Source: Heterodontus francisci (taxonomy: Eukaryota). From it: DNA of 64,000 nt. The DNA is taken from contig NW_027140807.1 in NCBI RefSeq assembly GCF_036365525.1, positions 930,001 through 994,000 of the forward strand, in the 5' to 3' direction. The notes below the pieces were generated by a model, which was not told where the DNA came from, searched no databases, and saw only the letters and a list, made by a program, of their open reading frames with translations. The position numbers and the translations under genes are program-made. Shown piece after piece: positions 29,437-63,558 of this stretch (positions are counted from its first letter, which is position 1; every line of letters starts with the position of its first letter).

Positions 29437-29488
29437 GATGTAACTACTAACTTTCATTTTGGCCCCGGTTCCAAATTAACAGTGTTGG
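29437..29488 (+). CDS. TRBJ: J2.13 DVTTNFHFGPGSKLTVL
   Basis: FGxG; AGTTTTCTG-12-CATTGTG; GTAAGT donor. Confidence 0.93.
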
Positions 29489-30650
29489 GTAAGTTTTAAA
29501 AAATGTAACGTTTTGAGCGCGTCAATTAAGTTAGTTGTATATTTATCCATGGCATTGCACTCCAGTACATAACTGCACAGTGCTGTATGTCTGACCCTGC
29601 TACCCAGATTTCCCTCGTTGCCCCACTTATTACCAAATGATTGTAATAATGATTATATTTAATTCGCAATATTTCAGCAAGATATATTCTGAAAACTGGT
29701 AGGGTAATGCAGAGAGGATTAAGTGGTGGTGGGGTGATTGATACCAGGGAGAAAGGATTTCAGCTTTATAGAGAGACTGGAAAAGCTGAATATTGTTCTC
29801 CTTGGAGCAGAGAAGGTTCAAGAAGATTTGCCAGTGTGGTACCAGGGATGAATGACTTCAATTGTATGGAGATACTGGAGAAACTGGGGTTGTTCTCCTT
29901 AGAGAAGAGAAGGTTAAGGTGAGAATTAATATCATATTCAAAATGTCCAAAATCATATGGTTTGTAATAGAGTAAATAATAACTCATTTCAGCTGGAAGA
30001 AGGGTCGGTAAGCAGAGAGAACAGATTGGTGATTGGTAAAAGAAACAAAGAGGGAGATGAGTATTTGCTTTTACACAGCCAGTTGTTGTCATGTGGAATG
30101 CACTGCCTGAAAATAGCTTAAACAATGCATTTGATGCACACTTGAAGGCTAACAAATGCAGGGTTATGTGGAAACAGCAAGAAGCTCTGGGTGTTAGCAG
30201 AAGATTGAGCAACCTGCAGGCTTAATTCTAATTGGTATCCTCTGATGCAGTACGACATAGTACTTGTCTGCATCTTTAATATCGACTAATATCCAATAAT
30301 AACAGCAAACAAAGCACAGGGCTTCCTTTGCAGGGGATTGGCTAGCATTCCAAAGCAGAGAAGTTACATGAAACTTATATAGAACTTTGGTTAGATTGTT
30401 GCAATTACAATGAATTTCGATGTAAAATCCCCAGCACCAACTCCATCCATCTAGAGGGGAGAGACACTCTTGTTAGTTTTAGAACATAGAAAAATACAGC
30501 ACAGAACAGGCCCTTCGGCCCACGATGTTGTGCCGATCCTTTGTCCTCTGTCAAGGACAATTTAATCTATACCCCATCATTCTCCTTTATCCATATACCT
30601 ATCTAAAAGCCGTATAGAACATACGGCTCGTGTAGGGTTGTAGCATGGTG

Positions 30651-30701
30651 CTTCAGAATATGAACAGTATTTTGGAGGGGGCACGAAGCTAAGCGTTTCG
30701 G
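30651..30701 (+). CDS. TRBJ: J2.14 SEYEQYFGGGTKLSVS
   Basis: FGxG; heptamer CATGGTG with a poor nonamer; GTGAGT donor. Confidence 0.88.
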
Positions 30702-34051: not shown

Positions 34052-34402
34052 GCGAAAACGATACGATTAGGCCTGCCAAAGTTACTGTCTTTGAGCCCTC
34101 TCCCGAAGAGATTAGAGAAAAGAAAAAAGCCACTGTGGTCTGCCTCGTAAGCGACTTCTACCCCGACAACATCAAGATCCACTGGCTTGTCGATGGCAAG
34201 GAGAAAGATGCCAATGACACGAACATTCACACTGATCTCAATGCCATCCTATCAAAAGAAAATACATCTTACAGCATCAGCAGCCGGCTGAGATTCGACG
34301 CCCTAGATTGGGCTCGGTCCAAGAACGTTGAGTGCAGAGTCGATCTCTACACTAACGAATCAGTGCCTACAACAAGCAGTTCAACATTAGCTGTCAAAGC
34401 AG
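34052..34402 (+). CDS. TRBC: TCR beta constant exon 1 (Ig C1 domain)
   Basis: cctgcAG acceptor; VTVFEPSPEEI..KATVVCLVSDFYPD..W..SISSRLRF..W..VECRV; GT donor at 34403. Confidence 0.97.
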
Positions 34403-34722
34403 GTAGGCACACTAGTGAGACCAATACCATTTTATTTCAGCGTCACAGAAATCAGAAAGTTGCATTTATATAGCACCTGTGCTCTTATGAAAGTACAAAT
34501 AAGCAAGTAGATGTATCAGTTAGTCAATAAATAATTAAATAATTCATGAAATAGAACAATATTGTAGTGTAAAGGGGAAGATATGGTTAAACACTCAATT
34601 AAAATGACTCTCAATATATTAGACTACAGTGCGGGACTCAATAGTGATAATCTACATTTACACAGTGATTTCATAAAATATTCTGATGCTGAATGTTTAT
34701 TGATTTTTCTTTCTTTTCCCAG

Positions 34723-34743
34723 AAATGTGCGGTATAAGTAAAG
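34723..34743 (+). CDS. TRBC: Cbeta exon 2 (connecting peptide EMCGISK, interchain Cys)
   Basis: Polypyrimidine-AG acceptor, GT donor, phase 1-1. Confidence 0.9.
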
Positions 34744-36114
34744 GTGAATATCTATCTGCTTCTATCTGTATCTGGTCTCCACACTTTGTAAAGGAGGTGA
34801 AGGTCCTTGAGAGGGTGCAGAGGAGATTTACCACAATGGTTCCAGAGATGAGGAATTTTAGCTAAAAAGTTACATTGGAGAACCTGGGTTGTTCTCCTTG
34901 GAGAAAAGGAGATTGAGGGGCTATTTGACAGTGTTGTACAAGATTATGACAGGTTTACAATAGGTAGACAAAGAAAAGTTGTCCCCATGAGTTGCTGGCA
35001 CAAGGACTGGGGGGGGGGGTCTCTGTGTTCAGGCTTTGGGAAAAATATGCAGTGGGGGGGGTGGGGGATGTGAGGAAGAAGTGTTTTATGCAGCGAATGG
35101 TAATGACCTGGAAGTCACTGTCTACGAGGGTGGTGGAAATGGAGATAATGAATGATTTCATAAGGAAACTGGACGGACTGTTGAGGGTAATTAAATTGCA
35201 GGGCAATGGGGATGGAAGGGGAGAGCTGGACTGACTGGATTGCTCTATAGAGATCCTGCATGGACTCGATGGGCCGAATGACCTCTTTCTGTGCTGTAAT
35301 GACTCCATGACTCAAAAAATATTCACCAATAATTCTGGAATTATTACTGTGTCAGACATTTCATGTATATACTCATTTCAACATTTCCAAGCTGTAGTTT
35401 TACAGTTATACATACTATCATGCACAACGAGTTTATGAGAAAACTCCTCTGGGAGAGAAAGGCCGTTGGAATTTCGAGACCAGCCTAGTCGAATGATATA
35501 ACCTCACGGTCCTCTTGGGTTCACGACCTCAGGGAAATATGTTGCCCTGTGATGAGGGAGAGGGGACGCCTGGGGATGGGAGGGGAGGGAGCTGTGTACA
35601 CCTGTCTTAAAACTTACAATTCCTTGGGAGTTCATAGTGTGAATCTGGCGTGGAGATAAGAGGAACAGTTCCACTTCCCAGAGGTTAAATTAGTTCAACA
35701 CATCATCTCAAAGAAGGTTCCTCCAAAGTTGCAGTGCAGCACACACGCTGTCTACTGGCACTGGGAGAGTCAGTCTGGATTATGGGGTTCATGTCTTTGG
35801 ACTGGGGCATGAACCCACAATCGTACGACTCAGACAGGAGAGCGTTACCCACTCAGCTAGAGCTGATACATACGTGAGCCATAGCTGACACATAAGTTAC
35901 AGCGGCCCCAATTCAGATCGGCCATATTGCTGAACTCCATTTGTCGTAAGGAATACCCCAGGGCTCCTTGCGTCAAAGGGAGATCAGTTCTGCTTTCGCA
36001 GCTCGACCCTTACATTGGGCTCCTTCACTGACACACATTACATTTTCACGCAGTAGCATTTCTTGCCTTGAGAGAACAGAGATTGCAACATTTTCTGTTA
36101 CATTTATTTTACAG

Positions 36115-36221
36115 AGGCGAAAATCCAAAGCATGGCAACAGCAAAACTGACATACCTGATCCTCATCTGCAAAAGCATCTTTTATGCAATTTTCATCTCA
36201 ACAATTGCTTGGAAAACTAAG
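36115..36221 (+). CDS. TRBC: Cbeta exon 3 (transmembrane; EAKIQSMATAKLTYLILICKSIFYAIFISTIAWKTK)
   Basis: Conserved TM Y..L..K(S)..Y (CART) motif with the charged Lys; canonical splice sites. Confidence 0.95.
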
Positions 36222-37166
36222 GTAAGATTAAACTTACTGAAGTTCTTAACATAGGTATTGTAATGGTGAAACTGGGTAAAGAAGTTTCTCCTGAATTCCA
36301 GACTGAAATTACGAGTGACTATCCGATATTCACGAGCCCTAGTTTTGCATTCCTATTGCACGCAGATGGAATACACCAATTCACTTTCCATTCATTCCTG
36401 CGCCCACAACACTAACCAACCAATTTAATCCAGTTGAACACAATTGTCAATGTTCTGGAATTTCCCTTGGAAAATAATTGAACTTATTGTGATTTTACAA
36501 GACTTTATATGCAAGGTTAGGAATGCATGAGCAGGAAAGAGCATGTGCATGGTTCGTCTCGATTATTCGTGCACATGATGATCTGGTCAGGACAGTGATG
36601 TCGAGTCATTGGAGAGGGTGAAGGGGCGATTTACTTGAACGGTAACAGTGTTGAGGGACCTCAGTGATGTGAGGAGAATACGGAAGTTGGGATTGTTCTC
36701 CTTGGATCAGGGAAGGTTAAGGAGAGATTTATTAGAGGTGTGCACAATGATGAAGGGTTTGGATAGGACAACGAATGGGGTAACAGCTTCAAAGAGGCAG
36801 CAGGATTGCCCAACCAAGGACACAGCTGTAAGGTGATTAGCCAAGGGAGCAGAGGGGCAGGTGAGAAATATATTTTGAGCCAGCGAGTTGTTGTGGTTGA
36901 GAATGCACTGGCTGAAAGGGCGGTGGAAGCTGATTCAGTAGTAACTTTCAAGAGGGAATTGGATGAATACTTGTTTGAGGGGGTGGAGGTAGTGGGGGAG
37001 GGGATAGTCTCAGGGCTATAGGGGAAAGAACTGTGAAATGGGACTAATTGGACAGCTCTTTCAAAATGCCAGTATAGGCACGCGGGACGAATGGCCTCCT
37101 TCTGTTCTGTAACAGTCCATAATTCCATGACGATAATAACGCCCTCTTTTTTTTATCATATACCAG

Positions 37167-37193
37167 ACGTCTTACAGCAAAAGGTTTGACTGA
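37167..37193 (+). CDS. TRBC: Cbeta exon 4 (cytoplasmic TSYSKRFD*)
   Basis: Polypyrimidine-cAG acceptor, phase 0, TGA stop. Candidate polyA signals ATTAAA (37442) and AATAAA (37969). Confidence 0.88.
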   Translation, partial: TSYSKRFD

Positions 37194-42533: not shown

Positions 42534-43454
42534 NNNNNNNNNNNNNNNNNNNNNNNNNNNNNNNNNNNNNNNNNNNNNNNNNNNNNNNNNNNNNNNNNNN
42601 NNNNNNNNNNNNNNNNNNNNNNNNNNNNNNNNNNNNNNNNNNNNNNNNNNNNNNNNNNNNNNNNNNNNNNNNNNNNNNNNNNNNNNNNNNNNNNNNNNNN
42701 NNNNNNNNNNNNNNNNNNNNNNNNNNNAATGAACAGAGGTGTAATGAAAAACAATACCGTGATGTGGGGGTAAATGCTGCTCTGGCACATGCATTTATAG
42801 TTTAACTGCTTGTCTTAAAGATGAAGTGTTGTTCTTCTAAAGGAATCACTACCACACCATTCGTGCAAAATTTTATTGACCTTACAAACACTAATCTGCA
42901 CACAGGAAACAGATTTCCACGCCCCTTTGTGTGAAGAAATGCTTCCTGACATCACTCCTGAATAGCCTGGCTCGATGTTTGGGTTTAAACCAACTTGTTC
43001 TGCCCCCGTGCCCCGCCCCCAACAACAGGATATAGTTTATCTCTATCTATTCTATCAACACATTCAGTCATTTTAAACACCTCAGTCAGATCACCGTTTA
43101 ATCTTCTATACCTGAGGGAATAAAGAGTCAGCAATGTAAACATGTTGGGTGTTGCATTTCCTTCACACTTGATTGACTGATCAAATATATTTTCAGATTC
43201 TCCGACCACAGGGAATCTATCATAGAATCAGAGACTGGTTACAGTACAGAAGGAGGCCATTTGGCCCATCGAGTCAATTCCAGCTCTCTGCAAGATCAAC
43301 CCAGCTAATGCAACTCCTCCGATCTCCCCTGTTAATTCAATTCGTCGCCCTAACTACCTGCAAATTCCTCTGTACTGCTTTCTTTCCATGTGTTTTTGTG
43401 GAAAGACTTTGTCAGAACAACACAGCAGCAGAATCGAATTATACAGAGAGACAC

Positions 43455-45004: not shown

Positions 45005-45037
45005 TTACTCAAAACTTTTCATCAACTTTCCTGAAAT
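45005..45037 (-). pseudogene. inverted Cbeta-like gene, exon 4 (cytoplasmic ISGKLMKSFE*)
   Basis: Strong polypyrimidine-cAG acceptor, phase 0; ends K-x-F-acidic-stop like TSYSKRFD*. Confidence 0.65.
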
Positions 45038-45318
45038 CTGGAAGCGGAAAAAAGGAAGGAAAAAGATTGAGTCAGTCATGGAATATTTCTTACACAATGC
45101 CCTGGGAAGGATTTCGAGTCAGTGGAAACACATTTCATGGCATTTAAAAAGATCCAGAGGGAAGGGTGTGTTTTTCTTAAACTCAGAGCGTTGTTGTCAT
45201 CTGGAAAGCAATGCCTGAAAAAGTGGACAATTGGATTCAGACTTGAAAGGGTAAATTTTGCAAGGTGATGAGGAAAGGGTGAGGGAGTCGGGCTCTCTCT
45301 CTGTCTCCCTTAAACGCT

Positions 45319-45357
<39 letters not shown>

Positions 45358-46337
45358 TTCTCTCTTTTTGTCGATGTGTTCCTTTCTCTGTCTGTGTCTC
45401 TGTGTCACTCTGTCTCTCCGTTGTACTCTCCTCTCTCTCCCTCTCTCTTCCTGTCTCTCCCACTATCACCGTCTCTCCCGCATGTTCTCTCTGTCTATTT
45501 CTCTCTCTTAGGTTCTCCCTCTGTCTGTTCCTGTCTCCCTCTCTCTGTGTCTCTGTATCTGTCTGTCTCTCCCTTAAATGCTTCTCTCTCTCTCTCTTTC
45601 TCTTCCGCTCTCTGTCTGCCTCAATCTTCCTTTCTCACCCTGTCTCTCTTTCATTGCCCAAAACTCTTTCTTCTTAATGTATATAATACAGACACACTCT
45701 CTCTCTCTGTTTATCCCTCGTATCTCAATTTCACTTTATTTCTGTCGAATTGCCTTTCTCTCTCATTTTATCTCCCCAGACTCTCTCTCTCTCTCTCTCT
45801 GTATCTGTCACTCTATGTTTATCTCTCTCTCTCTCTCTCTTCATCTCTCACTCTCTCTCACACACACAACTTATCCTTAGCTATCCCTTTCTCTCACTGT
45901 CTCCAACTGTCTCAGCATTTCCCTCACTGGTTTTGTCACTCTAGCTCTTTGTCTCTCTTTCTGTCTCTCTCTCTCTCTATGTTTTTTCTTTCTCGCTCTC
46001 TGTCCCTCCCCCTCACACTCTCTCTTTACTCTATAGGTACGTCTCTCTCATTCTCCTTCTCTATCGCTCACTCTGCCCTCATGTGAGAGGGTGGGGGAGA
46101 TTCAGGACCCCTTGGTGCAGGATCTAGATGGATTGCAGTCGACACAGTGGTGCTGATAGACTGTGTGGTTTCACTGTCGATTCACATGCACAGTGACATG
46201 GACTGGGTTCAGTGATTCACCCTATGTCTGGGGAATGTGCCTCACTGAGGCCTAAAACCTGGAGAGGATTGAAGTTTACAGAATAGAGAAGGGGGTCGGT
46301 TCTGCACTTCAGCAAAGTGTCCTCGTAATTCTCATAC

Positions 46338-46447
46338 CTTCCCCTTGAGCAGCACGATGGTGATCTTTGCCATAGACAGGAAGCTTTTGGAGATGAGTAA
46401 AGTGTAAGCAGCTCTTGCCACAATCTGTTGCCTCTGTATCCGCTCCA
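46338..46447 (-). pseudogene. inverted Cbeta-like gene, exon 3 (TM; VERIQRQQIVARAAYTLLISKSFLSMAKITIVLLKGK)
   Basis: tctttcAG acceptor, GTATGA donor, phase 1-0. Aligns with functional exon 3, including IQ and Y.LLI.KS with the TM Lys. Confidence 0.85.
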
Positions 46448-46620
46448 CTGAAAGACAGACAAGAAAGACCATAGTCACTGGCCCTAAAATCCAACTTAAT
46501 CATTATGTACATTCCGTGAGTGTGTGTGAGTGCGTGTGTGTATGTTTGCATGAGAGAGGGAGAGAGAGAGAGAGAGAGAGAGAGATCATAGCAAACAGAT
46601 AAAATATTGGAAGTTCTCAC

Positions 46621-46638
46621 CTTTCCCTTCACATAGGC
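46621..46638 (-). pseudogene. inverted Cbeta-like gene, exon 2 (GLCEGK, interchain Cys; acceptor AG-to-CG)
   Basis: 18-bp phase 1-1 exon, GTGAG donor, long T-rich tract ending ttgcCG. Confidence 0.7.
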
Positions 46639-49600
46639 CGGCAAGAAATTTAAAAGAGAAAAAAAACTTCAATTATTTGTGCATAAAACACAGTTTTCAT
46701 ATCACAGCAAGAACATAAAGTGGGAGAAACTTCTTCACTCTGAGATTTGTGCATTGCATCCAGGCTTCTGTCTCTCTTTCTCTCCCTGTCTCTCTCTCCT
46801 CTCTCACCCCCACCCCCGTCTCTCTCTGTCCCTCTGTTTCTCTCTGTCTGTCTCTGTCTCTCTTTCTCTCTCTCTCTCTTCTGGTCTCTCTCGATCTCTA
46901 TCTATCTGACTCTTTCTCTCTGACTGTCTCTCTCTCTCTCTTTCTGTCCCTCTTTCTCTTCCTGTCTCTCGCTGTGTCTCGGTTTTTCTCTTTCTCTCTG
47001 TCTCTCTCTCTCTGTCTCTCTCTCTGACTCTCTCACTCTGGCCCACTCGAGCTCTGTCTCTCTTTCTCGCCTTGTCTCTGTCTCTGTCTGTCTCTATTTC
47101 TGGCTGTCCCTTTCTCGATTTCTTTCTTTCTACCTCTCTCTCTCTGTCGCTGTCTCTGTGTGTCTCCCTCTGTCTCTCATTCTCTTCTTATCTCCGTCTC
47201 TGTCTTACCCCANNNNNNNNNNNNNNNNNNNNNNNNNNNNNNNNNNNNNNNNNNNNNNNNNNNNNNNNNNNNNNNNNNNNNNNNNNNNNNNNNNNNNNNN
47301 NNNNNNNNNNNNNNNNNNNNNNNNNNNNNNNNNNNNNNNNNNNNNNNNNNNNNNNNNNNNNNNNNNNNNNNNNNNNNNNNNNNNNNNNNNNNNNNNNNNN
47401 NNNNTATCTCTGTCTCTGTCTGTCTGTCTCTATCTGTCTATCTCTCTTTTTCTCTCTGTTTCTGTCTCCCTGTCTCTCTTTCTGTCTGTCTCTCTCAATC
47501 TCTGTCTCTCTCTCTCTGTCGCTGTCTTTCCCTCTGTCTCTCTGCCTCTCTGTGTCTCTGTCTTTCTCTCTGTTTGTGTCTAACTCTCTCTGTGTCTCTG
47601 TCTCTCGTTCTCTATCTCTCTCTCTTCCTTTCTCTCCTTTTCTCTCTGTCTCTGTCTCTCTGTTTCTCTGTGTGTCTCTCTCTGTCTCTCTCTGTCCCTC
47701 TATTTCTCTCATTTTCTCTCTGTATCTGTTTCGCTGTCTCTCTGTGTGTCTGTCTGTCTCTGTCGCTGCTTCTCTCTCTCACTGTCTCTGTCTTTCCCAC
47801 TGTCTTTCTGCCTCTCTCTCTTTCTCTCTCTTTCCTTTCCTGTCTCTCTCTCAAACAGTGTCTCTCTCTCAGTCTCTTTCTCTTTGACCATGTGTCTCTC
47901 TCTGCATGTGTCTCTCTCTTTCTCTCCTTTTCTCTCTGTCTCTGTTTCTGTCTCTCTGTTTCTGTCTCTCTCTGCCTCTCTCTCTCTCATTCACTGTCTC
48001 TGTCTTTCACGTTGTCTCTGCGTCTCTCGATCTGTCACTCATTTGTCNNNNNNNNNNNNNNNNNNNNNNNNNNNNNNNNNNNNNNNNNNNNNNNNNNNNN
48101 NNNNNNNNNNNNNNNNNNNNNNNNNNNNNNNNNNNNNNNNNNNNNNNNNNNNNNNNNNNNNNNNNNNNNNNNNNNNNNNNNNNNNNNNNNNNNNNNNNNN
48201 NNNNNNNNNNNNNNNNNNNNNNNNNNNNNNNNNNNNNNNNNNCTGCCTTTCTTTCTCTCTGTTTCTCTCTCTCTGTCACTGTATATCTATGTCTCTCTAT
48301 CTCGTCTCTCTCTGTCTCTCCCAATCTCTCCCTCTCTCCCTCTGTGTCTATCTCTCTATCTCTGTCTCTGTCTGTCTGTCTCTATCTGTCTATCTCTCTT
48401 TTTCTCTCTGTTTCTGTCTCCCTGTCTCTCTTTCTGTCTGTCTCTCTCAATCTCTGTCTCTCTCTCTCTGTCGCTGTCTTTCCCTCTGTCTCTCTGCCTC
48501 TCTGTGTCTCTGTCTTTCTCTCTGTTTGTGTCTAACTCTCTCTGTGTCTCTTTCTCTCGTTCTCTGTCTCTCTCTCTTTATTTCTCTCCTTTTCTCTCTG
48601 TCTCTGTCTTTCTGTTTCTCTGTGTTTCTCTCTCTGTCTCTCTCTGTCTCTCTATTTCTCTCATTTTCTCTCTGTGTCTGTTTCGCTGTCTCTCTGTGTG
48701 TCTGTCTGTCTCTGTCGCTGCTTCTCTCTCACACTGTCTCTGTCTTTCCCACTGTCTTTCTGCCTCTCTCTCTTTCTCTCTCTTTCCTTTCCTGTCTCTC
48801 TCTCTCAAACAGTGTCTCTCTCTCAGTCTCTTTCTCTTTGACCATGTGTCTCTCTCTGCATGTGTCTCTCTCTCTCCTTTTCTCTCTGTCTCTGTTTCTG
48901 TCTCTCTGTTTCTGTCTCTCTCTGCCTCTCTCTCTCTCATTCACTGTCTCTGTCTTTCACGTTGTCTCTGCATCTCTCGATCTGTCACTCATTTGTCNNN
49001 NNNNNNNNNNNNNNNNNNNNNNNNNNNNNNNNNNNNNNNNNNNNNNNNNNNNNNNNNNNNNNNNNNNNNNNNNNNNNNNNNNNNNNNNNNNNNNNNNNNN
49101 NNNNNNNNNNNNNNNNNNNNNNNNNNNNNNNNNNNNNNNNNNNNNNNNNNNNNNNNNNNNNNNNNNNNNNNNNNNNNNNNNNNNNNNNNNNNNNCTGCCT
49201 TTCTTTCTCTCTGTTTCTCTCTCTCTGTCACTGTATATCTATGTCTCTCTATCTCGTCTCTCTCTGTCTCTCCCAATCTCTCCCTCTCTCCCTCTGTGTC
49301 TATCTCTCTATCTCTGTCTCTGTCTGTCTGTCTCTATCTGTCTATCTCTCTTTTTCTCACTGTTTCTGTCTCCCTGTCTCTCTTTCTGTCTGTCTCTCTC
49401 AATCTCTGTCTCTCTCTCTCTGTCGCTGTCTTTCCCTCTGTCTCTCTGCCTCTCTGTGTCTCTGTCTTTCTCTCTGTTTGTGTCTAACTCTGTCTGTGTC
49501 TCTTTCTCTCGTTCTCTATCTCTCTCTCTTTATTTCTCTCCTTTTCTCTCTGTCTCTGTCTTTCTGTTTCTCTGTGTTTCTCTCTCTGTCTCTCTATTTC

Positions 49601-52600
49601 TCTCATTTTCTCTCTGTGTCTGTTTCGCTGTCTCTCTGTGTGTCTGTCTGTCTCTGTCGCTGCTTCTCTCTCACACTGTCTCTGTCTTTCCCACTGTCTT
49701 TCTGCCTCTCTCTCTTTCTCTCTCTTTCCTTTCCTGTCTCTCTCTCTCAAACAGTGTCTCTCTCTCAGTCTCTTTCTCTTTGACCATGTGTCTCTCTCTG
49801 CATGTGTCTCTCTTTCTCCTTTTCTCTCTGTCTCTGTTTCTGTCTCTCTGTTTCTGTCTCTCTCTGCCTCTCTCTCTCTCATTCACTGTCTCTGTCTTTC
49901 ACGTTGTCTCTGCATCTCTCGATCTGTCACTCATTTGTCNNNNNNNNNNNNNNNNNNNNNNNNNNNNNNNNNNNNNNNNNNNNNNNNNNNNNNNNNNNNN
50001 NNNNNNNNNNNNNNNNNNNNNNNNNNNNNNNNNNNNNNNNNNNNNNNNNNNNNNNNNNNNNNNNNNNNNNNNNNNNNNNNNNNNNNNNNNNNNNNNNNNN
50101 NNNNNNNNNNNNNNNNNNNNNNNNNNNNNNNNNNNNCTGCCTCTCTTTCTCTCTGTTTCTGTCTCTCTGTCACTGTATATCTCTGTCTCTCTATCTCGTC
50201 TCTCTCTGTCTCTCTCAATCTCTTTCTCTCTCTCTCTCTGTCTTTCCCGCTGTCTCTCTGCCTCTCTCTGTCTCTGTCTTTCTCTCTTTCTCTCGGTCTG
50301 TCTCTCTCTCAATGTCTCTGCCTGTCTTTCTCTGTCTGTCTTACTCTGTCTGTCTGTCTGTCTGTCTCTCTTTCTCCTTTTCTCTCTGTCTCTGTTTCCA
50401 TGTCTATCTGTGCGTCTCTATCCGCCTCTGTCAATCTCTCTGTCTCTATTTCTCTTCCTGTCTCTCTTTCAGTCTCTCTCTCTATCCCTATTTCTCTGTG
50501 TATGTGTCTGTCTCTCTGTCTCTGTCTTTCTCTCTATCTCTCTNNNNNNNNNNNNNNNNNNNNNNNNNNNNNNNNNNNNNNNNNNNNNNNNNNNNNNNNN
50601 NNNNNNNNNNNNNNNNNNNNNNNNNNNNNNNNNNNNNNNNNNNNNNNNNNNNNNNNNNNNNNNNNNNNNNNNNNNNNNNNNNNNNNNNNNNNNNNNNNNN
50701 NNNNNNNNNNNNNNTCTGTTTCCCTGTCTCTCTGTGTGTCTCTCGGTCTCTGTCTCTGCTTCTCTCTCTCACTGTCTCTGTCTTTCCCACTGTCTCTCTG
50801 CCTCTCTCTTTCCTTTCCTGTCTCTCTCTCTCTGTCTCTCTCACAGTCTGTCTCTCTTTGACCATGTGTCTGTCTCTGTCTCTGTCTCTCCCTTTCTCTC
50901 CTTTTCTCTCTGTCTCTGTCTCTGTATCTGTCTCTCTGTTTCTGTCTCTGTCTGCCTCTCTCTCTCTCATTCACTGTCTCTGTCTTTCCTGTTGTCTCTG
51001 CCTCTCTCGATCTGTCACNNNNNNNNNNNNNNNNNNNNNNNNNNNNNNNNNNNNNNNNNNNNNNNNNNNNNNNNNNNNNNNNNNNNNNNNNNNNNNNNNN
51101 NNNNNNNNNNNNNNNNNNNNNNNNNNNNNNNNNNNNNNNNNNNNNNNNNNNNNNNNNNNNNNNNNNNNNNNNNNNNNNNNNNNNNNNNNNNNNNNNNNNN
51201 NNNNNNNNNNNNNNNNNTGCCTCTCTTTCTGTCTGTTTCCGTCTCTCTGTCACTGTCTCTCTCTGTCTCTCTATCTCATCTCTCTCTCTGTCTCACTCAT
51301 TGTCTTTCTCTTTCTCTGTGTCTTTCCCGCTGTCTTTCTGCCTCTCTCTGTCTCTCTTTCTCTCGGTCTGTGTCTCTCTCACTGTCTCTGCCTGTCTTTC
51401 TCTGTCTGTCTTACGCTCTCTGTCTGTCTGTCTGTCTCTTTCTCCTTTTCTCTCTGTCTCTGTTTCCATGTCTATCTGTGTGTCTCTCTTTGTCTCTGTC
51501 ACTCTCTCTGTCTCTGTTTCTCTTCCNNNNNNNNNNNNNNNNNNNNNNNNNNNNNNNNNNNNNNNNNNNNNNNNNNNNNNNNNNNNNNNNNNNNNNNNNN
51601 NNNNNNNNNNNNNNNNNNNNNNNNNNNNNNNNNNNNNNNNNNNNNNNNNNNNNNNNNNNNNNNNNNNNNNNNNNNNNNNNNNNNNNNNNNNNNNNNNNNN
51701 NNNNNNNCTCTGTCTCTATTTCCCTGTCTCTCTGTGTGTCTCTCGGTCTCTGTCTCTGCTTCTCCCTCTCACTGTCTCTGTCTTTCCCACTGTCTCTCTG
51801 CCTCTCTCTCTGTCTCTCTCTTTCATTTCCTGTCTCGCTCTCTCTCTGTCTCTCTCTCAGTCTCTCTCTCTTTGACCATGTGTTTCTCTCTGCATGTCTC
51901 TCTCTCTCTGTCTCTCTCTGTCTCTCTCTTTCTCTCCTTTTCTCTCTGTCTCTGTTTCTGTCTCTCTCTGCCTCTCTCTCTCTCATTCCCTGTTGCTGTC
52001 TTTCCCGCTGTCTTTCCCGTTGTCTCTGCGTCTCTCGATCTGTCACTCATCTGTCNNNNNNNNNNNNNNNNNNNNNNNNNNNNNNNNNNNNNNNNNNNNN
52101 NNNNNNNNNNNNNNNNNNNNNNNNNNNNNNNNNNNNNNNNNNNNNNNNNNNNNNNNNNNNNNNNNNNNNNNNNNNNNNNNNNNNNNNNNNNNNNNNNNNN
52201 NNNNNNNNNNNNNNNTCTCTGCCTCTATCTCTCTGTCTGTCTCTCTCTTTTTCTTTCTGTCTGCCTCTCTCTCTGTTTCTCTCCCTCTCTTTGTATCTGT
52301 GTGTGTCTCTCTCTCTTTCTCTCTGTCTCTATCTCTATTTCTCTCTCTCTGNNNNNNNNNNNNNNNNNNNNNNNNNNNNNNNNNNNNNNNNNNNNNNNNN
52401 NNNNNNNNNNNNNNNNNNNNNNNNNNNNNNNNNNNNNNNNNNNNNNNNNNNNNNNNNNNNNNNNNNNNNNNNNNNNNNNNNNNNNNNNNNNNNNNNNNNN
52501 NNNNNNNNNNNNNNNNNNNNNNNNNNNTCAATCTATCTCTTTCTCGGTCTCTCTCTCTGTCTCTCTCTCTCTTTCTCCCTCTCTGTCTGTCTCTGAGTGC

Positions 52601-52938
52601 GAACCATTTGGGTGAACATAAGGTTATTGATGGTTACTGAACCGAGGCGTAAAATAGAGTAATGGTAGAGATTTATCTTAATATAACAGAATGGTGGAAC
52701 AAGCTTGAACGGCTGAATGGCCTCGGCCTCTTCCTGTGTTCGTCAGTCTCACCTATTATGTAGACTTCCCCAAGCTATGAATTCCCTCATCCCTGGAACC
52801 ATTGCCGTGAATATGTTGTGCACCCTCTCTAACACCTTCACATCCTCCCTCAAGGCTGCATTGATAAAGGTTCAGTATAGCTTCCTTGCTTTGGGCTCGG
52901 GTGGAGCGGAGGTGATTCCAGGCATTGCAGACACTCAC

Positions 52939-53267
52939 CTGCCTTACTGCTGATCTTGGCATCTTGAGAAATCTCTGTGCCGGCTTTACTGTAATGGGTC
53001 ACTTTGCAGGAATACTGCTTGCGGGCCCCATTCGGCCATGAGAACCCTCACCCTACTGGTCCAAGCTGTAGCGGTCTGCATCATCCTTTACCTGCCTGTC
53101 AGTCAGCACATCCTTCGTCTCGATCTCCTCGTTGGCCCCCGTCCAGGAGAACTTCCCGCAGTCCGAGAAGAAGCCACTGGCCAGGCATACAATAGTGGCT
53201 TTCATGATTTCTTCATCCGACAGCTCAAAAACGGTCACGGTGGGATGCTAAACCTCTTGGTCTGCCT
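52939..53267 (-). pseudogene. inverted Cbeta-like gene, exon 1 (Ig C1 domain)
   Basis: cacAG acceptor, GTGAGT donor. Conceptual translation EADQEV*HPTVTVFELSDEEIMKATIVCLASGFFSD..FSW..VLTD..RYSL/TSRVRVLMAEW/ARKQYSCKVTHY..ISSKA, with one stop and two +1 frameshifts. Confidence 0.92.
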
Positions 53268-53534
53268 CTGTGGGTGAGCGAAACATGAGTGTTAGGAACT
53301 GTGGGGATGGAAGGGGGGTCGGGTGGGGGGGGGGCGGGGGAGGGGTTGTGGCGAGGGGTGGGGCGTGTGTTTACCCCAGCGTTCATTCTCCTTCACCACA
53401 ACTTCGACAGTTTGTTGTAGACTCTGTAAAAGAAAGGAGGGAGGGGAAAAAACAGGGAATTACAGACCAGTTAGCCTTACATCAGTAGTGGGAAAATGCT
53501 GGAGACTATTATAAAGGATGTGACAACAGAACAG

Positions 53535-56500
53535 AGATCGGGAGGGTTATTGGGGCTGGAAGAGGTTACAGAGTTGAGGAGTGTAGCAGGGGCTGGAGGG
53601 GGTTACAGAGATAGGGAGAGGTGCAGGGGATGAAGGAGTTTCCAGAGATAGGGAGGGTTGTAGAGGCTGGAGGATGTAACAGAAATAGGGAGGATTCAAT
53701 TTAGTTATACAGCACTGAAACAGGCCCTTCGGCCCACCGAATCTGTGCCGACCATCAACCACCCATTTATACTAACCCGACATTAATTCCATATTCCTCC
53801 CACATCCCCACCTGCACCCACCGATACTAGGGGCAATTCATAATGGCCAATTTACTTATCAACCTGTAAGTCTTTGGCACGTGGCAGGAAACCGGAGCAT
53901 CTGGAGGAAACCCACATGGACACAGAGAGAAATTGCAAACTCCACACAGGCAGTACCCAGAATTGAACCCGGGTCGCTGGAGCTGTGAGGCTGCAGTGCT
54001 CACCACTGCGCCACTGAGCCACTGAGGGTTGTCGCGGCTAAAGAGGTTACAGAGATAGGGAGGGTTGTAGGGGCTGGTTGAGTTCCAGAGATAGGGAGAG
54101 CTGTCGAGACTGGGGGAGGTAACAGAGATAGGGAGGGTTGCAGGGGCTGGTAGAGTTTACAGATATAGGGAGGGGCTTAAGGGCTGGAGGAGGTTACAGA
54201 GATAGGGAGGGTTGTAGGGGCTGGAGGAGGTTACAGAGATAGGGAGGGTTGTGGTGGCTGGATGAGGTAACAGAGATGGGGAGGGTTGTAGTGACTGGAG
54301 GAAGTAATAGAGATAACAGTGCTGAAGTGGGTTACAGAGATAGGGAGGGTTGTAGAGGCTGGAGGATGTAACAGAAATAGGGAGGATTCAATTTAGTTAC
54401 ACAGCACTGAAACAGGCCCTTCGGCCCACCGAATCTGTGCCGACCATCAACCACCCATTTATACTAACCCTACACTAATTCCATATTCCTACCACATCCC
54501 CACCTGCACCTACCTATACTCGGGGCAATACATAATGGCCAATTTACTTATCAACCTGCAAGTCTTTGGCACGTGGCAGGAAACCGGAGCACCCGGAGGA
54601 AACCCACATGGACACAGAGGGAAATTGCAAACTCCACACAGGCAGTACCCAGCATTGAACCCGGATCGCTGGAGCTGTGAGGCTGCGGTGCTCGCCACTG
54701 AGCCACTGAGGGTTGCAGGGGCTAAAGAGGTTACAGAGATAGGGAGGGTTGTAGGGGCTGGTTGAGTTACAGAGATAGGGAGAGCTGTAGGGACTGGGGG
54801 AGGTAACAGAGATAGGGAGGGTTGCAGGGGCTGGTAGAGTTTACAGATATAGGGAGGGGCTTAGGGGCTGGAGGAGGTTACAGAGATAGGGAGCGTTGTA
54901 GGGGCTGGAGGAGGTTACAAAGATAGGGAGGGTTGTGGTGGCTGGAGGAGGTTACAGAGATAGGGAGGGTTGTGGTGGCTGGAGGAGGTTACAGAGATAG
55001 GGAACGTTGTAGTGACTGGAGGAAGTAATAGAGATAGGGAGTGCTGATGGGGCTGGAGGAGGTAACAGAGATAGGGAGTGTTGTAGGGGCTAGTAGAGTT
55101 TACAGATATAGGGAGGGGATTAGGGGTGGAGGAGGTAACAGAGATAGGGAGGATTGTAGGGGCTGGAGGAGGTTACAGAGTTTGGGAGGGTTGTAGGGGC
55201 TGGAGGAAGTTACAGAGATGGGGTGGGGTGTAGTGGCTGGAGGAGGTAATAGAGATAGGGAGTGCTTTAGGGACTGGAGGAGGTAACAGAGATAGGGAGG
55301 TTTGTAGGGGCTGGAAGACGTTACAGAGATAGGGAGGGGTGCAGGGGCTGGAGGAGATAACAGAGATAGGGAGTGGTGTCGGGGCTGGAAGAGGTTACAG
55401 AGATAGGGGGCTTTAGGGGATGGAGGAGGTTACAGAGATAGGGGTGGGTGTAGAGGCTGGAGGATGTTACTGAGATAGGACGGGTTTTAGGGACTAGGAA
55501 GAGGTTACAGGGATAGGGAGGAGTGTGGAGGCTGGAGGTTACAGTGATAGGGAGGGCTGTAGGGGCTGGAGGTGGTAACAGAGATAGGGAGGGTTGTAGG
55601 GGCTGAAAGATGTTACAGAGATAGGAAGGGGAGTCGAGGTTGGAAGAGGTTACAGAGATAGGGAGGGTTATCAGGGTTGGAAGAGGTTTCAGAGATAGGG
55701 TGGGTTGTAGAGGCTGGAGGAGGCTATAGAGTTAGGGAGGGTTGTTGGGGCTGGTAGAGTTATCAGAGATAGGGAGAGCTGTAGGGGCTGGGGGAGGTAA
55801 CAGAGATAGGGAGGGCTGTAGGGGCTGGTAGAGTTTACAGATATAGGGAGGGGTTTAGGGGCTGGAGGAGGTTACAGAGATAGGGAGGGCTGTCGGGGCT
55901 GGAGGAGGTTACAGAGTTAGGGAGGGTTGTAGGGGCTGGAGGAAGTTACAGAGATAGGGTGGGGTGTAGGGGCTGGAGGAGGTTACAGAGATAGGGAGGG
56001 TTGTAGTGGCTGGAGGAGGTGACAGAGATAGGGAGGGCTGTCGTGGCTGGAGGAAGTAATAGAGATATGGAGTGCTGTGGGGGCTGGAGGAGGTAACAGA
56101 GATAGGGAGGGCTGTAGGGGCTGGTAGAGTTTACAGATATAGGGAGGGCTTTAGGGGCAGGAGGAGGTAACAGAGAAAGGGAAGGTTGGAGGGGCTGGAG
56201 GAGGTTACAGAGATAGGGTGGGGTGTAGTGGTTGGAGGAGGTTACAGAGATAGGGAGGGTTGTAGTGGCTGGAGGAGGTTACAGAGATAGGGAGGGTTGC
56301 AGTGACTGGAGGAGGTAATAGAGATAGGGAGTGCTGTAGTGGCTGGAGGAGGTAACAGAGATAGGGAGTCTTGTAGGGGCTGGTAGAGTTTACAGATATA
56401 GGGAGGGATTTAGGGGCAGGACGAGGTTACAGAGTTAGGGAGTGCTTTAGGGGCTGGAGGAGGCAACAGTGATAGGGTGGGTTGTAGGGGCTGGAAGACG

Positions 56501-59500
56501 TTACAGAGATAGGGATGGGTGCAGGGCCTGGAGGGGATAACAGTGATAGGGAGTGTTGTCGGAGCTGGAAGAGGTTACAGAGATAGGGAGGGTTGCAGGG
56601 GCTGGAGGAGGTTACAGAGATAGGGTGGGGTGTAGGGGTTGGAGGAGGTTCCAGAGATAGGGAGGGTTGTAGTGGCTGGAGGAGGTAACAGAGATAGGGA
56701 GGGTTGCAGTGACTGGAGGAGGTAATAGAGATAGGGAGTGCTGTAGTGGCTGGAGGAGGTAACAGAGATAGGGAGTCTTGTAGGGGCTGGTAGAGTTTAC
56801 AGATATAGGGAGGGGTTTAGTGGCAGGATGAGGTTACAGAGTTAGGGACTGCTGTTGGGGCTGGAGGAGGTAACAGTGATAGGGAGGGTTGTAGGGGCTG
56901 GAAGACGTTACAGAGATAGGGATGGGTGCAGGGCCTGGAGGAGATAACAGAGATAGGGAGTGTTGTCGGAGCTGGAAGAGGTTACAGAGATAGGGAGGGT
57001 TGCAGGTGCTGGAAGAGATTACAGAGATAGGGATGGGTGTAGAGGCTGGAGGAGGTTACTGAGATAGGGAGGGTTTTAGGGACTAGGAAGAGGTTACAGG
57101 GATAGGGAGGGGTGTAGAGGCTGGAGGAGGTTACAGAGATAGGGAGGGCTGTAGGGGCTGGGGGAGGTAACAGAGATAGGGAGGGTTGTAGATGCTGGTA
57201 GAGTTTACAGATATAGGGAGGGGTCTAGCGGCTGGAGGAGGATACAGAGTTAGGGAGGGTTGTAGGGGCTGGAGGAGGTTACAGAGATAGGGAGGTTTGT
57301 CGGGGCTGGAGGAGGTAACAGAGATATGGAGGGTTGTAGGCGCTGGAGGAGGTTACAGAGATAGGGAGGGTTGAAGGGTCTGGAGCTGGTAACAGAGATA
57401 GAGAGAGCTGTAGGGGTTGGGGGAGGTAACAGAGAAAGGGAGGTCTGCAGGAGCTAAAGCAGGTTACAGAGATGGGGAGGGGTCTAGCGGATGAAGGAGG
57501 TTACAGAGATAGGGACGGGTGTAGGGGCTAGAGGAGGTAACAGAGATAGGGAGAGCTGTAGGGGCTGGAGGAGATAACAGAGTTAGGGATGGGTGAAGGA
57601 GCTAGAGGAGGTTGCAGCGATAGGGTGGGTTGTAATGGCTGAAGGAGGTTACATAGATGGGGAGGGTTGCAGGGGCTGGTGGAGTTTACAGAGGTAGGAA
57701 GTGTTGTCGGGGCTGGAGGAGGTAACAGAGTTAGGGATGGGTGTAGGGGCTGGAAGAGGTAAATGAGATAGGGAGAGCTGTCGGGGTTACAGGATGTTAC
57801 AGAGTTATGGAGGGGTGTAAGGGCTGGAGGAGGGTACAGAGATAGGGAGGGTTGTACGTGCTGGAGGAGGTTACAGAAATAGGGAGGGTTGTAGTGGCTG
57901 AAGGAGTTTACAGTGATAGGGAGGGGTGTAGCGCCTGAAGGAGGTAACAGAGATAGGGAGAGCTGTAGGGGCTGGAGGAGATAACAGAGTTAGCGATGGG
58001 TGTAGGAGCTGGAGGAGGTTACAGCGATAGGGTGGGTTGTAATGGCTGAAGGAGGTTACAGAGATAGGGAGAGCTGTAGGGGCTGGAGGACGTTACAGAA
58101 ATAGGGAGGGTTGTAGTGGCTGAAGGAGTTTACAGAGATTGGGAGGGTTGTCGGGGCTGGAGAAGGTTACAGGGATAGGGTGGGTTGTAGGGGCTGGAGG
58201 AGGTAACAGAGATAGGAAGAGTTGCAGGGGCTGGAAGAGGTTACAGAAATAGGGAGTGGTGTAGAGGCTGGAGGAGGTAACAGACATAGAGAAGGGTGTT
58301 GAGGCTGGAGGATGTTACAGAGATAGGGAGGGTTGTAGGGGCTGGAAGAGGTTACAGAGATCGGGAGTGGTGCAGAGGTCGGCGCAGGTTGCTGAGATAG
58401 AGAGGGTTGTAGGGTCTGGAGGAGTTCTCAGAGATAGGGAGAGCTGTCGGGGCTGGAGGTGGTAACTGCGATAGAGAGATCTGTATGTGCTGGAGGAGGT
58501 AACAGAGATAGGGAAGGTTGCAGGGGATGGAAGAGTTTACTGAGATCGGGAGGTGTGTAGAGGCTGGAGCAGATAACAGTGATAGGGAGGGCTGGAGGGA
58601 CTGGAGGAGGTAACAGAGATAGCGAGGGATGTCGGGGCTGGAAGAGGTTACAGAGATAGGGAGTGGTGTAGAGGCTGGAGGAGGTAACAGATGTAGGGAG
58701 GGTTGTTGGGGCTGGAGGAGGTCACAGAGATAGGGATGGGTGTAGGGGCTGGAGGAGGTTACAGAGATAGGGAGGGTTGTAAGGGCTGGAGGAGGTAACA
58801 GAGATAGGGATGGGTGTACGGGCTGGAGGAGGTAACAGAGATAGGGAGGGCTGTAGGGACTCGAGAATCTGACAGAGATAGGGAGAACTGTAGGAGCTGT
58901 AGCATGTTACAGATATATGGAGGGGTGTTGTGGCTGGAGGAGGTTACAGAGAAAGGGAGGGTTGTCGTGGTTGGAGGATTTTACGGCGAAAGAGACGAGT
59001 GTCGGAGCTGAAGGAGGTTACAGAGATAGGGAGAGCTGTCGGGGCTGGAGGAGTTTACAGAGATAGGGAGGAGTGTCGGGTCTGAAGGAGGTTACAGAGA
59101 TTGGGAGCGGTGTCGGGGCTGGAGGAGTTTGCAGAGTTAGTGAGGGTTGTAGGGGATGGAGGAGTTTACAGAGTTAGGGAGGTTTGTAGGGGCTGGAGGA
59201 GGTGACAGAGTTAGGGAGGTTTGTAGGGGCTGGAGGAGGTGACAGAGTTAGGGAGGGTTGTAGGGGCTGGAGGAAGTTACAGAGATAGGGTGTGGTGTAG
59301 GGGCTGGAGGAGGTTACAGAGTTAGTGAGGGTTTTGGTGGATGGAGGAGGTTACAGAGTTAGGGAGGGTTGTAGGGGCTGGAGGGGGTTACAGAGATAGG
59401 GAGGTTTGTAGGGGCTGGAGGAGGTGACAGAGTTAGGGAGGGTTGTTGGGGTTGGAGGAAGTTACAGAGATAGGGTGTGGCGTAGGGGCTGGAGGAGGTT

Positions 59501-60110
59501 ACAGAGTTAGTGAGGGTTGTAGGGGATGGAGGAGTTTACAGAGTTAGGGAGGGTTGTAGGGGCTGGAGGAGGTTACAGAGATAGGGAGGTTTGTAGGGGC
59601 TGGAGGAGGTGACAGAGTTAGGGAGGTTTGTAGGGGCTGGAGGAGGTGACAGAGTTAGGGAGGGTTGTAGGGGCTGGAGGAAGTTACAGAGATAGGGTGT
59701 GGTGTAGGGGCTGGAGGAGGTTACAGAGTTAGTGAGGGTTGTAGGGGATGGAGGAGGCTACAGAGTTAGGGAGGGTTGTAGGGGCTGGAGGGGGTTACAG
59801 AGATAGGGAGGTTTGTAGGGGCTGGAGGAGGTGACAGAGTTAGGGAGGGTTGTAGGGGCTGGAGGAGGTGACAGAGCTAGGGAGGGTTGTAGGGGCTGGA
59901 GGAGGTTACAGAGATAGAGAGGGTTGTAGGGGCTGGAGTATGTTACAGAGACAGGGAGGGTTGTTGGCGTTGGAGGAAGTTACAGAGATAGGGTGGGGTG
60001 TAGGGGCTGGAGGAGGTTACAGAGTTAGGGAGGGTTGTAGGGGCTGGAGGAGGTTACAGAGATAGAGAGGGTTGTAGGGGTTGAAGGAGGTTGCAGAGAT
60101 AGGGAGGGTT
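53535..60110. repeat. 37-bp G-rich tandem repeat array (about 6.5 kb)
   Basis: Unit GGGGCTGGAGGAGGTTACAGAGATAGGGAGGGTTGTA. Confidence 0.97.
53697..54705 (-). mobile_element. two HE1/V-SINE-like tRNA-derived SINE copies (about 53697-54020 and 54388-54705)
   Basis: On -: A-box TGGCGCAGTGG, B-box GGTTCAATTC, V-domain-like gtgggtttcctccgggtgctccggtttcc, CR1-like tail. Duplicated together with flanking satellite (about 690-bp period). Confidence 0.8.
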
Positions 60111-60136
60111 CGCGTGGGGTTGCATTTTGCACTGAT

Positions 60137-60194
60137 CTTACACTGTAAATCCACTTCCGTTTCCAAAATACACAGGTTTATAATTTCCCGTATT
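60137..60194 (-). pseudogene. inverted J pseudogene NTGNYKPVYFGNGSGFTV*
   Basis: FGxG; RSS on + CACGCCA-12-TGTAAAAAG (60195-60222); TAA at the last codon and the normal donor lost. Confidence 0.75.
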
Positions 60195-60929
60195 CACGCC
60201 ATCACATTGCTCGTGTAAAAAGCCTTTAAACCATTCCTCTGTCAGTTATGAGCCGCCTCTGAGACAGAACCCTCTCTGACCCTCATTGCCCGAGTCCCAG
60301 TCCAGAGCTGCAAGCCTATCATCCAGGGCAACACTACCTCCAGGACTGAGAGAAAAGGAGACTTAGAACAGGAGTGTGTAGGAAAGCGAGGGAGTGGTAG
60401 TTGATTGAACACAAACGAAGGATGGCAAGGAGAGAGGGGGCAAGCAGAGACAATCAACAGGGAAAGGGAAGAGGGCAAGTAGAGAGAGAGATAAGGATAA
60501 GAAATAATGAGGATGAGGAACTTAGAGGCAGAAACTGTGAACGAAAGAGAAATAAAGTGAGTTCACACAAGATGACACCAAGGATGAGAGACTTCAGTTA
60601 ATGTGGAGAGACTGCAGGAGCTGAGATTGTTCTCCTGAAGAGACGGTTCAAGGGAGATTTAGTAGAGACGTTTGCAATTTATCATGGTTTTGACAGAGTA
60701 AATGAGGCGAAACTGTTTCCCGTGACACAAAGCAGTGAGCTGTTGTGATGTGGAATGCACTGCCTGAAAGGGCGGTGGGATTCACTTATAGTATTACAAA
60801 GAGAATTGGGTCAACAGCTGAAGGGAGGAATTGCAGGTCTATAGCGATAGGGTGGGAGGGAACTGGGATCAATCAGACAGCTGTAGAAAAGAGCCAACCC
60901 GGGCACCGTGGTCAATGGTCCAGAACTGT

Positions 60930-61960
60930 ATTGCTCTCTCTGACTGAATCTCTCTCTCTCTCTCTACCTGAATCTCTCTCTCCTTTTCTCTCTCAATCTC
61001 TATAAATCTCTCCCTCTCTGATTCTCTCCCTCTCTCCCTGAATCTCTCCCTCTCTCTCTCTGAATCTCTCCCCCTCACTCTCTTGGGTTCTCTCCCTCTC
61101 TCCCTGAATCTCTCCCTCTCTCTCTGAATTGCTCTCTCTCTGACTGAATCTCTCGCTCTCTCTGCCTGAATCTCTCTCTCCTTTTGTCTCTCAATCTCTG
61201 TAAATCTCTCTGTCTCTTGGGTTCTCTCCCTCTCTCCCTGAATCTCTCCCGCTCTCTCTGAATTGCTCTCTCTCTCTCTAAATCTCTCTCTCTCTCTGAA
61301 CCCCCCCCTCTGAATCTCTCCCACTCTCTCTCTTTCTGCCTCTCCCTTTCTGAATTGCTCTCTCTTTCTCTTTCCAAATCTCTCTCTCTCTCTCTGAAAC
61401 ACCCCCCACCCTCTGAATCGCTCCCACTCTCTTTCTTTCTCTCTGCATCTCTTTCTCTGAATTGCTCTCTCTCTCTCTCTAAATCTCTCTCTCTGAAACA
61501 CACCCCTTCCCTCTGAATCGCTCCCACACCCTCTCTGTCTCTCTGCCTCTCTCTCTCTCTGAATCTCTCCCCCTCTCTCGAAATAACTCTCTCTCTCTTT
61601 CTGAAACTATCTCTCTCTCTGCCTCTCATTCTCTCTCGGAGTGTTTCTCTCTCAATGTGTGATTCTGTCTCTGTGTTTATCTCACTGGCTTTCTGTCNNN
61701 NNNNNNNNNNNNNNNNNNNNNNNNNNNNNNNNNNNNNNNNNNNNNNNNNNNNNNNNNNNNNNNNNNNNNNNNNNNNNNNNNNNNNNNNNNNNNNNNNNNN
61801 NNNNNNNNNNNNNNNNNNNNNNNNNNNNNNNNNNNNNNNNNNNNNNNNNNNNNNNNNNNNNNNNTCTCTCTGGTTCCATTTTTTTCTCGCCATTTTTTCT
61901 ATCTCACATTTTTCTCTGCTTATTTCCCTGTCTCTGTTGCTTTCTCTTTCTGTTTATTTC
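60930..61960. repeat. (CT)-rich low-complexity tract (another at 62480-64000)
   Basis: ctctctgaat-type repeats. Confidence 0.9.
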
Positions 61961-62119
61961 CCCCTCTCTGCACCAAAGAGACACAATGATCGAAGTGCCT
62001 CTTCCAACACAATAAGAAGATCCCATCTGGTCAGACACGGTAAACTCAGATATTATTGTGTGTACCGGCTCCTTTTACCCCCACTCAACCTCCAGCAGCT
62101 GGACTCGAGCATTACTTAC

Positions 62120-62168
62120 CCAGTACGGTGAGTCGGGTCCTACCTCCGAAGGTAGCTGGATCGTTCAC
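62120..62168 (-). CDS. inverted J segment VNDPATFGGRTRLTVL (FGGR, non-canonical)
   Basis: RSS on + CACAGAG-12-ATTGAAACC (62169-62196); GTAAGT donor on -. Confidence 0.88.
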
Positions 62169-62397
62169 CACAGAGAGTGAACCCCCCATTGAAACCCCCT
62201 CCCCCAGCATGCCTCTCGCCTTGCCTGGGCAGTTTGCTATCTCTTCAGGGGGCATGTGCCCCATGAGATGGTCAACTCAGGATTCAGTCTGCTCCTGCCT
62301 GTCCTGACAGTGGAGGCGCCTTGCTGCAGGGGTGGGGATATCCTGGGCACTGGGGCAGGCAGTCGGGTAGCCTGTGAGAAGGGCAAGCGGACGGTGG

Positions 62398-62478
62398 AGT
62401 TCTTGCACGGGGTGAGCACAGGAATGTAACACGGTGCTATACTGACCTCCCACGATGTTTCAAAGCAGTTCAATAAAA
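62398..62478 (-). other. inverted D segment GGAGGTCAGTATAG (62437-62450) with 5' 12-RSS and 3' 23-RSS
   Basis: On -: ..TTTTATTGA-12-CATCGTG | D | CACCGTG-23-GCAAGAACT. Confidence 0.85.

Positions 62479-63527: not shown

Positions 63528-63558
<31 letters not shown>

Follow-up and report, generated by a model that had tools for sequence, protein, structure and literature searches.

In the horn shark Heterodontus francisci, the T-cell receptor (TCR) beta-chain locus, TRB, very probably holds a second, pseudogenised cluster of diversity (D), joining (J) and constant (C) elements, which belongs to an old Cbeta lineage distinct from the canonical one and converges on the canonical Cbeta gene. The window in which we examined it comprises 64,000 nt of the forward strand (assembly GCF_036365525.1, NW_027140807.1:930,001-994,000), and all positions are given within this window. 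Throughout, B1 denotes the canonical shark Cbeta and B2 is our name for the second shark TRBC lineage. The cassette consists of a D-like segment, two J segments (J1 and J2) and four C exons, which follow one another in the correct order over 17 kb of a single strand, the minus strand (Table 1). In this assembly it sits 3' of the intact canonical Cbeta of the plus strand, and the two C genes lie tail-to-tail, 7.8 kb apart. An earlier sequence-only reading of this DNA had described the same ordered cassette, and all of its parts are indeed present, although the acceptor dinucleotide of C exon 2 is CG (46640-46639) and not AG.

The identity of the C gene emerged from queries with the exons and their frame pieces one by one. 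The longest unbroken part of exon 1, a 64-aa piece at 53056-53247 of the minus strand, matched the C1-set family of Pfam (E 1.9e-5; 25.4 bits against a cut-off of 21), and nearly every one of its best matches among solved structures was a TCR beta chain, with E values of about 5e-6 (phmmer, PDB). Similarly, when a catshark protein (P0005) was aligned to the window by tblastn it fell on exon 1 with an E value of 2.3e-22 and on the transmembrane (TM) exon with one of 3.6e-8. The connecting peptide and TM helix encoded at 46447-46338 read AAYTLLISKSFLSMAKITIVLLKGK. The exon phases, 1,1,1,0, follow the same four-exon plan as the plus-strand Cbeta, just as the sequence-only reading had proposed for the functional gene and its counterpart.

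Table 1. Features of the window, beginning with the minus-strand cassette (Ig, immunoglobulin; RSS, recombination signal sequence; TRF, Tandem Repeats Finder).
Feature	Position	Strand	Details
D-like segment GGAGGTCAGTATAG	62437..62450	-	5' 12-RSS 62451-62478; 3' 23-RSS 62398-62436
J1 VNDPATFGGRTRLTVL	62120..62168	-	12-RSS 62169-62196; GTAAGT donor; FGxG broken to FGGR
J2, defective J-like (YFGNGSGFTV)	60137..60194	-	heptamer 6/7, poor nonamer 4/9
C exon 1, C1-set Ig domain	52939..53267	-	CAG acceptor, GTGAGT donor
C exon 2, GLCEGK with interchain (connecting-peptide) Cys	46621..46638	-	catshark orthologues GLCEGN
C exon 3 (connecting peptide, TM) VERIQRQQIVARAAYTLLISKSFLSMAKITIVLLKGK	46338..46447	-	51-53% identical to catshark/whale-shark TM exon
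C exon 4, cytoplasmic tail ISGKLMKSFE and TAA	45005..45037	-	catshark orthologue CSGKLAKHFD
37-bp satellite array	54024..60110		TRF, 146 copies, 80% matches; occupies most of the J-C intron
Nine N runs	47213..52527		within C intron 1 of the minus-strand cassette, tract 84% C+T
N run	42534..42727		between the two convergent C genes; relative orientation of the cassette hinges on this join
Intact canonical Cbeta	34052..37193	+	exons 34052-34402, 34723-34743, 36115-36221, 37167-37193
Two D-J blocks feeding the plus-strand Cbeta	10441..30697	+	D1 10441-10453, D2 19688-19700, about 20 J
TRBV segment ending YYCAAS	250-567	+	canonical 23-RSS: perfect CACAGTG, 23-nt spacer, nonamer TCAAAAACA

The closest relatives of this C gene are shark proteins of the same type. 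A HMMER search against 1.84 billion representatives placed first a RefSeq model of the horn shark itself (P0001; 88% identity) and then P0004, a Rhincodon typus model, and P0005 and P0006, both proteins of Scyliorhinus torazame (52-57%), with the B2 proteins ranking ahead of mammalian TRBC and Ig light chains. A further relative, P0023 of S. canicula, is annotated as 'M1-specific T cell receptor beta chain-like'. The suggestion that the gene might be intact in other cartilaginous fish was thus borne out in two catsharks (S. canicula and S. torazame) and the whale shark. Intact B2 in these animals has a C1-set domain, a Cys in the connecting peptide, the CD3-contact Lys in its TM helix and a short tail; a canonical TRBJ (FGEGTRLTVL) and same-strand variable (V) exons lie ahead of it, and the catshark gene models join these V exons to the B2 J-C. 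Exon by exon the intact catshark gene matches the window: J NAEQYFGEGTRLTVL, C domain, GLCEGN, TM segment YSLLISKSILYMATVIILLLKMK and CSGKLAKHFD. In S. torazame, B2 (P0005, scyTo_0012005) and B1 (P0024, scyTo_0012006) are both listed on one contig of 215,987 bp, and B1 and B2 are therefore neighbours in a catshark also. Word-indexed protein searches found no batoid or chimaera B2 (3, 3 and 2 hits), a result that says little given their limited coverage. As a separate matter, the whale-shark model P0004 omits the 18-nt Cys exon (ISSR/RVKRMQ), a typical miss of gene prediction, and automatic models of B2-type genes may lose the interchain Cys.

Identities and trees agree in setting B2 apart. The minus-strand C is 91% identical to P0001, 53-57% to intact B2, 42-44% to mammalian TRBC and 31-38% to B1, and B1 and B2 are 25-38% identical to one another. 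With its plus-strand neighbour it shares only 35%, as expected from the claim that the two are far diverged, and a recent copy of the adjacent Cbeta is excluded by this figure together with the separate clades of the two genes. Exon 1 entered the tree as a read-through with an X at each break. A tree that contained one Ig heavy-chain (IgH) row and a TRG-like row, both on very long branches, did not resolve the TCR clade; with these two rows removed, the final tree (LG+C20) comprised TRBC, Ig light-chain (IgL) and IgH rows. In it the B2 clade received support of 99/97 and the B1 clade 99/98, the union of B1 and B2 was weak (83/74), and all TRBC stood together against IgL and IgH at 85/87, with the plus-strand C pairing weakly with P0024. 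The minus-strand C domain therefore falls inside the TRBC group and, within it, in the B2 clade together with P0001 and the intact catshark and whale-shark proteins, and the proposal of an old, separate, TCR-beta-like isotype is supported. A supposed closeness to tetrapod TRBC survives in raw identity (42-44% to mammals versus 35% to the neighbour), whereas the tree is neutral on it, as grouping either B2 or B1 with bony-vertebrate TRBC was not rejected (approximately unbiased test, p 0.28). Finally, in a Foldseek search with the AlphaFold (AF2) model of P0004 (pLDDT 82), the top 50 PDB matches were all TCR beta chains.

The copy in the window is a pseudogene, and the idea that the cassette is decaying in this genome can be read directly from its lesions. 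Exon 1 contains an in-frame TAG at 53250-53248, a 9-nt deletion at 53204/53205 that removes the three residues present after EEI in every other TRBC, and two +1 frameshifts, near 53062 and 53026; both frame changes are required to read YSL/TSRVRVLMAEWG/RKQYSCKVTHY. In exon 3 the Lys is present (LLISKS), the next conserved Tyr has become Ser (SKSFLS, where intact orthologues have SKSILY or SKSIVY), and the TM helix carries an additional Lys. An open reading frame (ORF) through all C exons with intact splice sites, as a functional cluster would have, was not found: the stop, the two frameshifts, the deletion and the CG acceptor all interrupt it.

To place these lesions among the copies of the gene, contigs of four sequencing runs were compared over 52528-54020, X1 being a DNA run and X5 an RNA run by guess; in organisms B and C the contigs over this interval hold flanking repeats only. 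Both frameshift sites are spanned gap-free by a DNA contig and by an X5 contig of the same organism, and one contig matches the window exactly over 53105-53234. The same sample contains at least two further versions of exon 1, which differ from each other at 53041 and 53070, possess the 9 nt (adding RAP), and read AAG for TAG and Tyr-Val for Cys-Gly. Because of these further versions we conclude that the dead cassette has itself been duplicated in the horn shark genome; the divergence among the copies, about 3-5% in the contigs, would exceed the allelic range. One of the versions is the RefSeq protein XP_067881640.1 (P0001), annotated for Heterodontus francisci on a record of 1.57 Mb. It begins inside the RSS of J1 and is therefore a germline J-C model, with the J1 peptide as its N-terminus and FGGRTRLTVL in both. 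It also crosses the first frameshift in the shifted frame and terminates at the same TGA, so that this frameshift is common to the copies, predates their divergence and is no assembly slip. Read depth in X5 was 27-176 over 52928-53277 and zero in the unique intron bins 52578-52677 and 52878-52927, both of which are covered by X1. This pattern fits spliced transcripts, which thus seem to be made, without proving them.

Upstream of the C exons, the RSS of J1 has a heptamer CTCTGTG (6/7), a nonamer GGTTTCAAT (6/9) and a spacer of 12, and is comparable in quality to those of the plus-strand J segments. The only GT donor of J2 leaves two bases (phase 2), which is incompatible with C exon 1. In our own RSS scan the D-like segment scored 5/7 for the heptamer and 5/9 for the nonamer on its 5' side (spacer 12), and 6/7 and 6/9 on its 3' side (spacer 23). 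Of the D and J segments that the sequence-only reading listed with RSSs, J1 has a good RSS and donor, J2 is defective, in the nonamer as well as in the donor phase, and the D-like segment meets the difficulty given next.

Several points weigh against reading the minus-strand features as one decayed B2 cluster converging on the canonical gene. The RSS scores of the D-like segment are at chance level, with about five comparable pairs per shuffled window; the element is made credible by its position, 270 nt upstream of J1 and on the right strand (roughly p 0.02), and not by those scores. The TAG at 53250 is unsupported, since all X1 and X5 contigs there read another base (AAG), and this lesion may be limited to the copy in the window or may be an error. 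That X5 represents RNA is itself a guess. The tail-to-tail orientation depends on the join across the N run at 42534-42727, and exon 1 is joined to exons 2-4 across nine N runs in a genome with several near-identical copies, so that the four exons might derive from more than one of them.

These last two points lead to the alternative that survives best, namely that the cassette is real while its place or orientation is a scaffolding artefact, or that it is a chimera of near-identical copies joined across N runs. There are twelve N runs in the 64 kb, including the nine between exons 1 and 2, the one between the C genes and one more between J1 and J2, and one of the further exon 1 versions is annotated on a separate record, as described above. 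However, all parts are ordered on one strand over the full 17 kb, and C intron 1 is a 5.7-kb low-complexity tract, 84% C+T, that flanks every N run alike, the same C+T-rich repeat thus standing on both sides of each intron gap. No N run touches an exon, and the reading frames are therefore unaffected by the gaps. In S. torazame, moreover, B2 and B1 share the 216-kb contig under consecutive locus tags. Taken with this evidence, an artefact or a chimera is unlikely.

We consider it quite improbable that B2 stands for a receptor chain apart, having a V set and a partner of its own, rather than for a beta isotype. A precedent exists in the squamate TCR epsilon locus, TRE, an old duplicate of TRB whose divergent C keeps residues for pairing with TCR alpha (PMC11754216), and both the low identity of B2 to B1 (25-38%) and the catshark models that join same-strand V exons to the B2 J-C would suit such a chain. 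TRE, however, is a separate and squamate-specific locus, whereas B2 lies inside the TRB locus beside B1, retains a Cys in the connecting peptide, the Lys/Tyr motif of the beta-type TM segment and a J that resembles TRBJ, and groups with TRBC (85/87), B1 being its sister at weak support (83/74). Least credible of all is a gene that functions in this animal and only appears broken through assembly or consensus errors, since, although no contig contains the TAG at 53250 and a version without the 9-nt deletion exists, both frameshifts recur in the RefSeq model of the paralogue as well as in independent contigs, each of the two copies has FGGR in J1, exon 2 has a CG acceptor and the TM segment lacks its Tyr.

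Intact B2 would represent an alternative beta-chain isotype with its own D-J set. Assembly of B2 is likely to proceed by deletional V-D-J joining from a V of its own strand, because the catshark models join same-strand V to J-C2, and inversional joining from a V of the opposite strand would also be possible. From the horn shark cassette no chain can result, as exon 1 is frameshifted twice and other lesions are added. The RSS of J1, and perhaps that of the D-like segment, still look usable and germline J-C transcripts seem to be made, and the cassette might, as a dead end, still become accessible, rearrange and give transcripts.

The canonical Cbeta of the plus strand is 56-62% identical to B1-type TRBC of S. 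torazame (P0024, P0026) and Mustelus asterias (P0025); its exon 2 encodes EMCGISK and its exon 4 TSYSKRFD followed by the stop. The two tandem D-J blocks (10352-31000), the starts of which are 86% identical, precede this single C gene, and the 23-RSS nonamers of both D1 (GGGACAACAGGGA) and D2 (GGGACAGGGGGGA) score 9/9. In the mammalian D-J-C repeats the C gene was copied too, whereas here the D-J block was duplicated without it. About 100 nt upstream of exon 1 of this Cbeta, at approximately 33913-33950 of the plus strand, there is a degenerate J-like stretch, VYSGVGTKLTAL, within an ORF of 217 aa.

Kilobase tracts of (TCTC/TGTC)n, 84% C+T on the plus strand, occur at 46639-52351, 62742-63961 and about 39700-42500; they flank both C genes and enclose nearly all N runs. 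The window ends 1.5 kb past the D-like segment, and these 1.5 kb are C+T-rich repeat. The 37-bp unit of the satellite in the J-C intron, GAGGGTTGTAGGGGCTGGAGGAGGTTACAGAGATAGG, recurs at 16751-16927, inside the plus-strand J cluster. Contig depth at the edge of the satellite array was 1e5 to 3e6 in three different organisms, and the satellite is therefore genome-wide and common to several species. An Rfam scan of the 64 kb returned no hits.

How unusual is the arrangement? Mammals have D-J-C duplicates in their TRB locus that stand in tandem and hardly differ, and nothing but a V (TRBV30) is inverted. The building plan recurs here: J carries a 12-RSS, C has four exons of phases 1,1,1,0, and the putative D lies between a 12- and a 23-RSS. 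The mammalian locus likewise has an element in opposite orientation 3' of the last C; that element is a lone V, however, whereas in the horn shark it is a whole, divergent D-J-C unit. Divergent Cbeta isotypes are known in other vertebrates. For example, TRBC1 and TRBC2 of the channel catfish are 36% identical, and divergent TRBC is found also in damselfish and axolotl (PMC10464911); zebrafish and bichir belong here too, with five annotated TRBC genes in the bichir (PMC10464911; PMC10322711 supplement). These isotypes of ray-finned fish and salamanders resemble the present case in having at least two Cbeta genes per TRB locus, with D-J sets of their own and about two thirds of residues differing. 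They are mostly tandem, on one strand and lineage-specific, in contrast to B2, which is common to three shark orders, convergent and dead here.

Units on both strands have been described as well. In salmonids and pike, V-D-J-C units in opposite orientation are the rule (PMC10464911), and for the brownbanded bamboo shark a pair of D-J-C units, one per strand, is tabulated, as are V segments of either strand (Giorgetti et al. 2023, PMC10322711 supplementary file 6). Its two Cbeta genes each yield tens of thousands of cDNA molecules (PMC10322711). As in the horn shark, D-J-C units thus occupy both strands of one TRB locus, and because V segments in the bamboo-shark and salmonid loci lie on both strands, some joins there must be made by inversion. 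Those units, however, stand head-to-head with V between them, while the horn shark C genes are placed tail-to-tail. We translated the published bamboo-shark primers by hand, which gave SPDEIKQK and LDGTAISATD for beta 1 and PEEVNKKQ and LTDPNSRSVDG for beta 2. The beta 2 peptide matches the B1 motif TDLNSISMDG, and neither Cb1 nor Cb2 resembles B2; judged from these peptides, B2 may therefore be a further, third type.

The sequence-only reading had known of no description of such a cassette. Our literature search found no paper that names the B2 lineage, although it was incomplete and 'not described' is thus unproven; RefSeq automatic models of this gene type exist (XP_067881640.1, XP_072356531.1), and opposite D-J-C clusters are published (PMC10322711, PMC10464911). 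The novelty was thus overstated. The cassette is a real and fairly ordinary relic of locus evolution and no new kind of system. A more novel reading would make B2 an undescribed third Cbeta lineage, at least as old as the ancestor of bullhead, carpet and ground sharks, and the C gene of a convergent V-D-J-C unit that shares its inter-C region with the canonical unit. We regard this reading as rather doubtful. On its terms a common 3' enhancer might lie between the two C genes. A still bolder version would make the inverted V 3' of the tetrapod Cbeta a remnant of such a convergent unit.

For the shark TRB locus, the aggregate data mean that the one Cbeta commonly cited is not alone: several shark orders have kept intact, over the long term, a second type that shares about 35% identity with it, and at least one has lost this type. 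The finding is relevant to the age of multiple beta isotypes and of an inversional TRB architecture. Annotators gain a concrete pseudogene to label, and repertoire studies of catsharks and the whale shark can overlook some chains if their primers fit a single Cbeta. Our understanding of how TCR genes function is unchanged; other fishes are already known to have several divergent Cbeta genes, and D-J-C units on either strand. If the more novel reading is true, the contrast between catsharks and the whale shark, where B2 is intact, and the horn shark, where it is dead, would serve as a natural experiment on the purpose of a second beta isotype.

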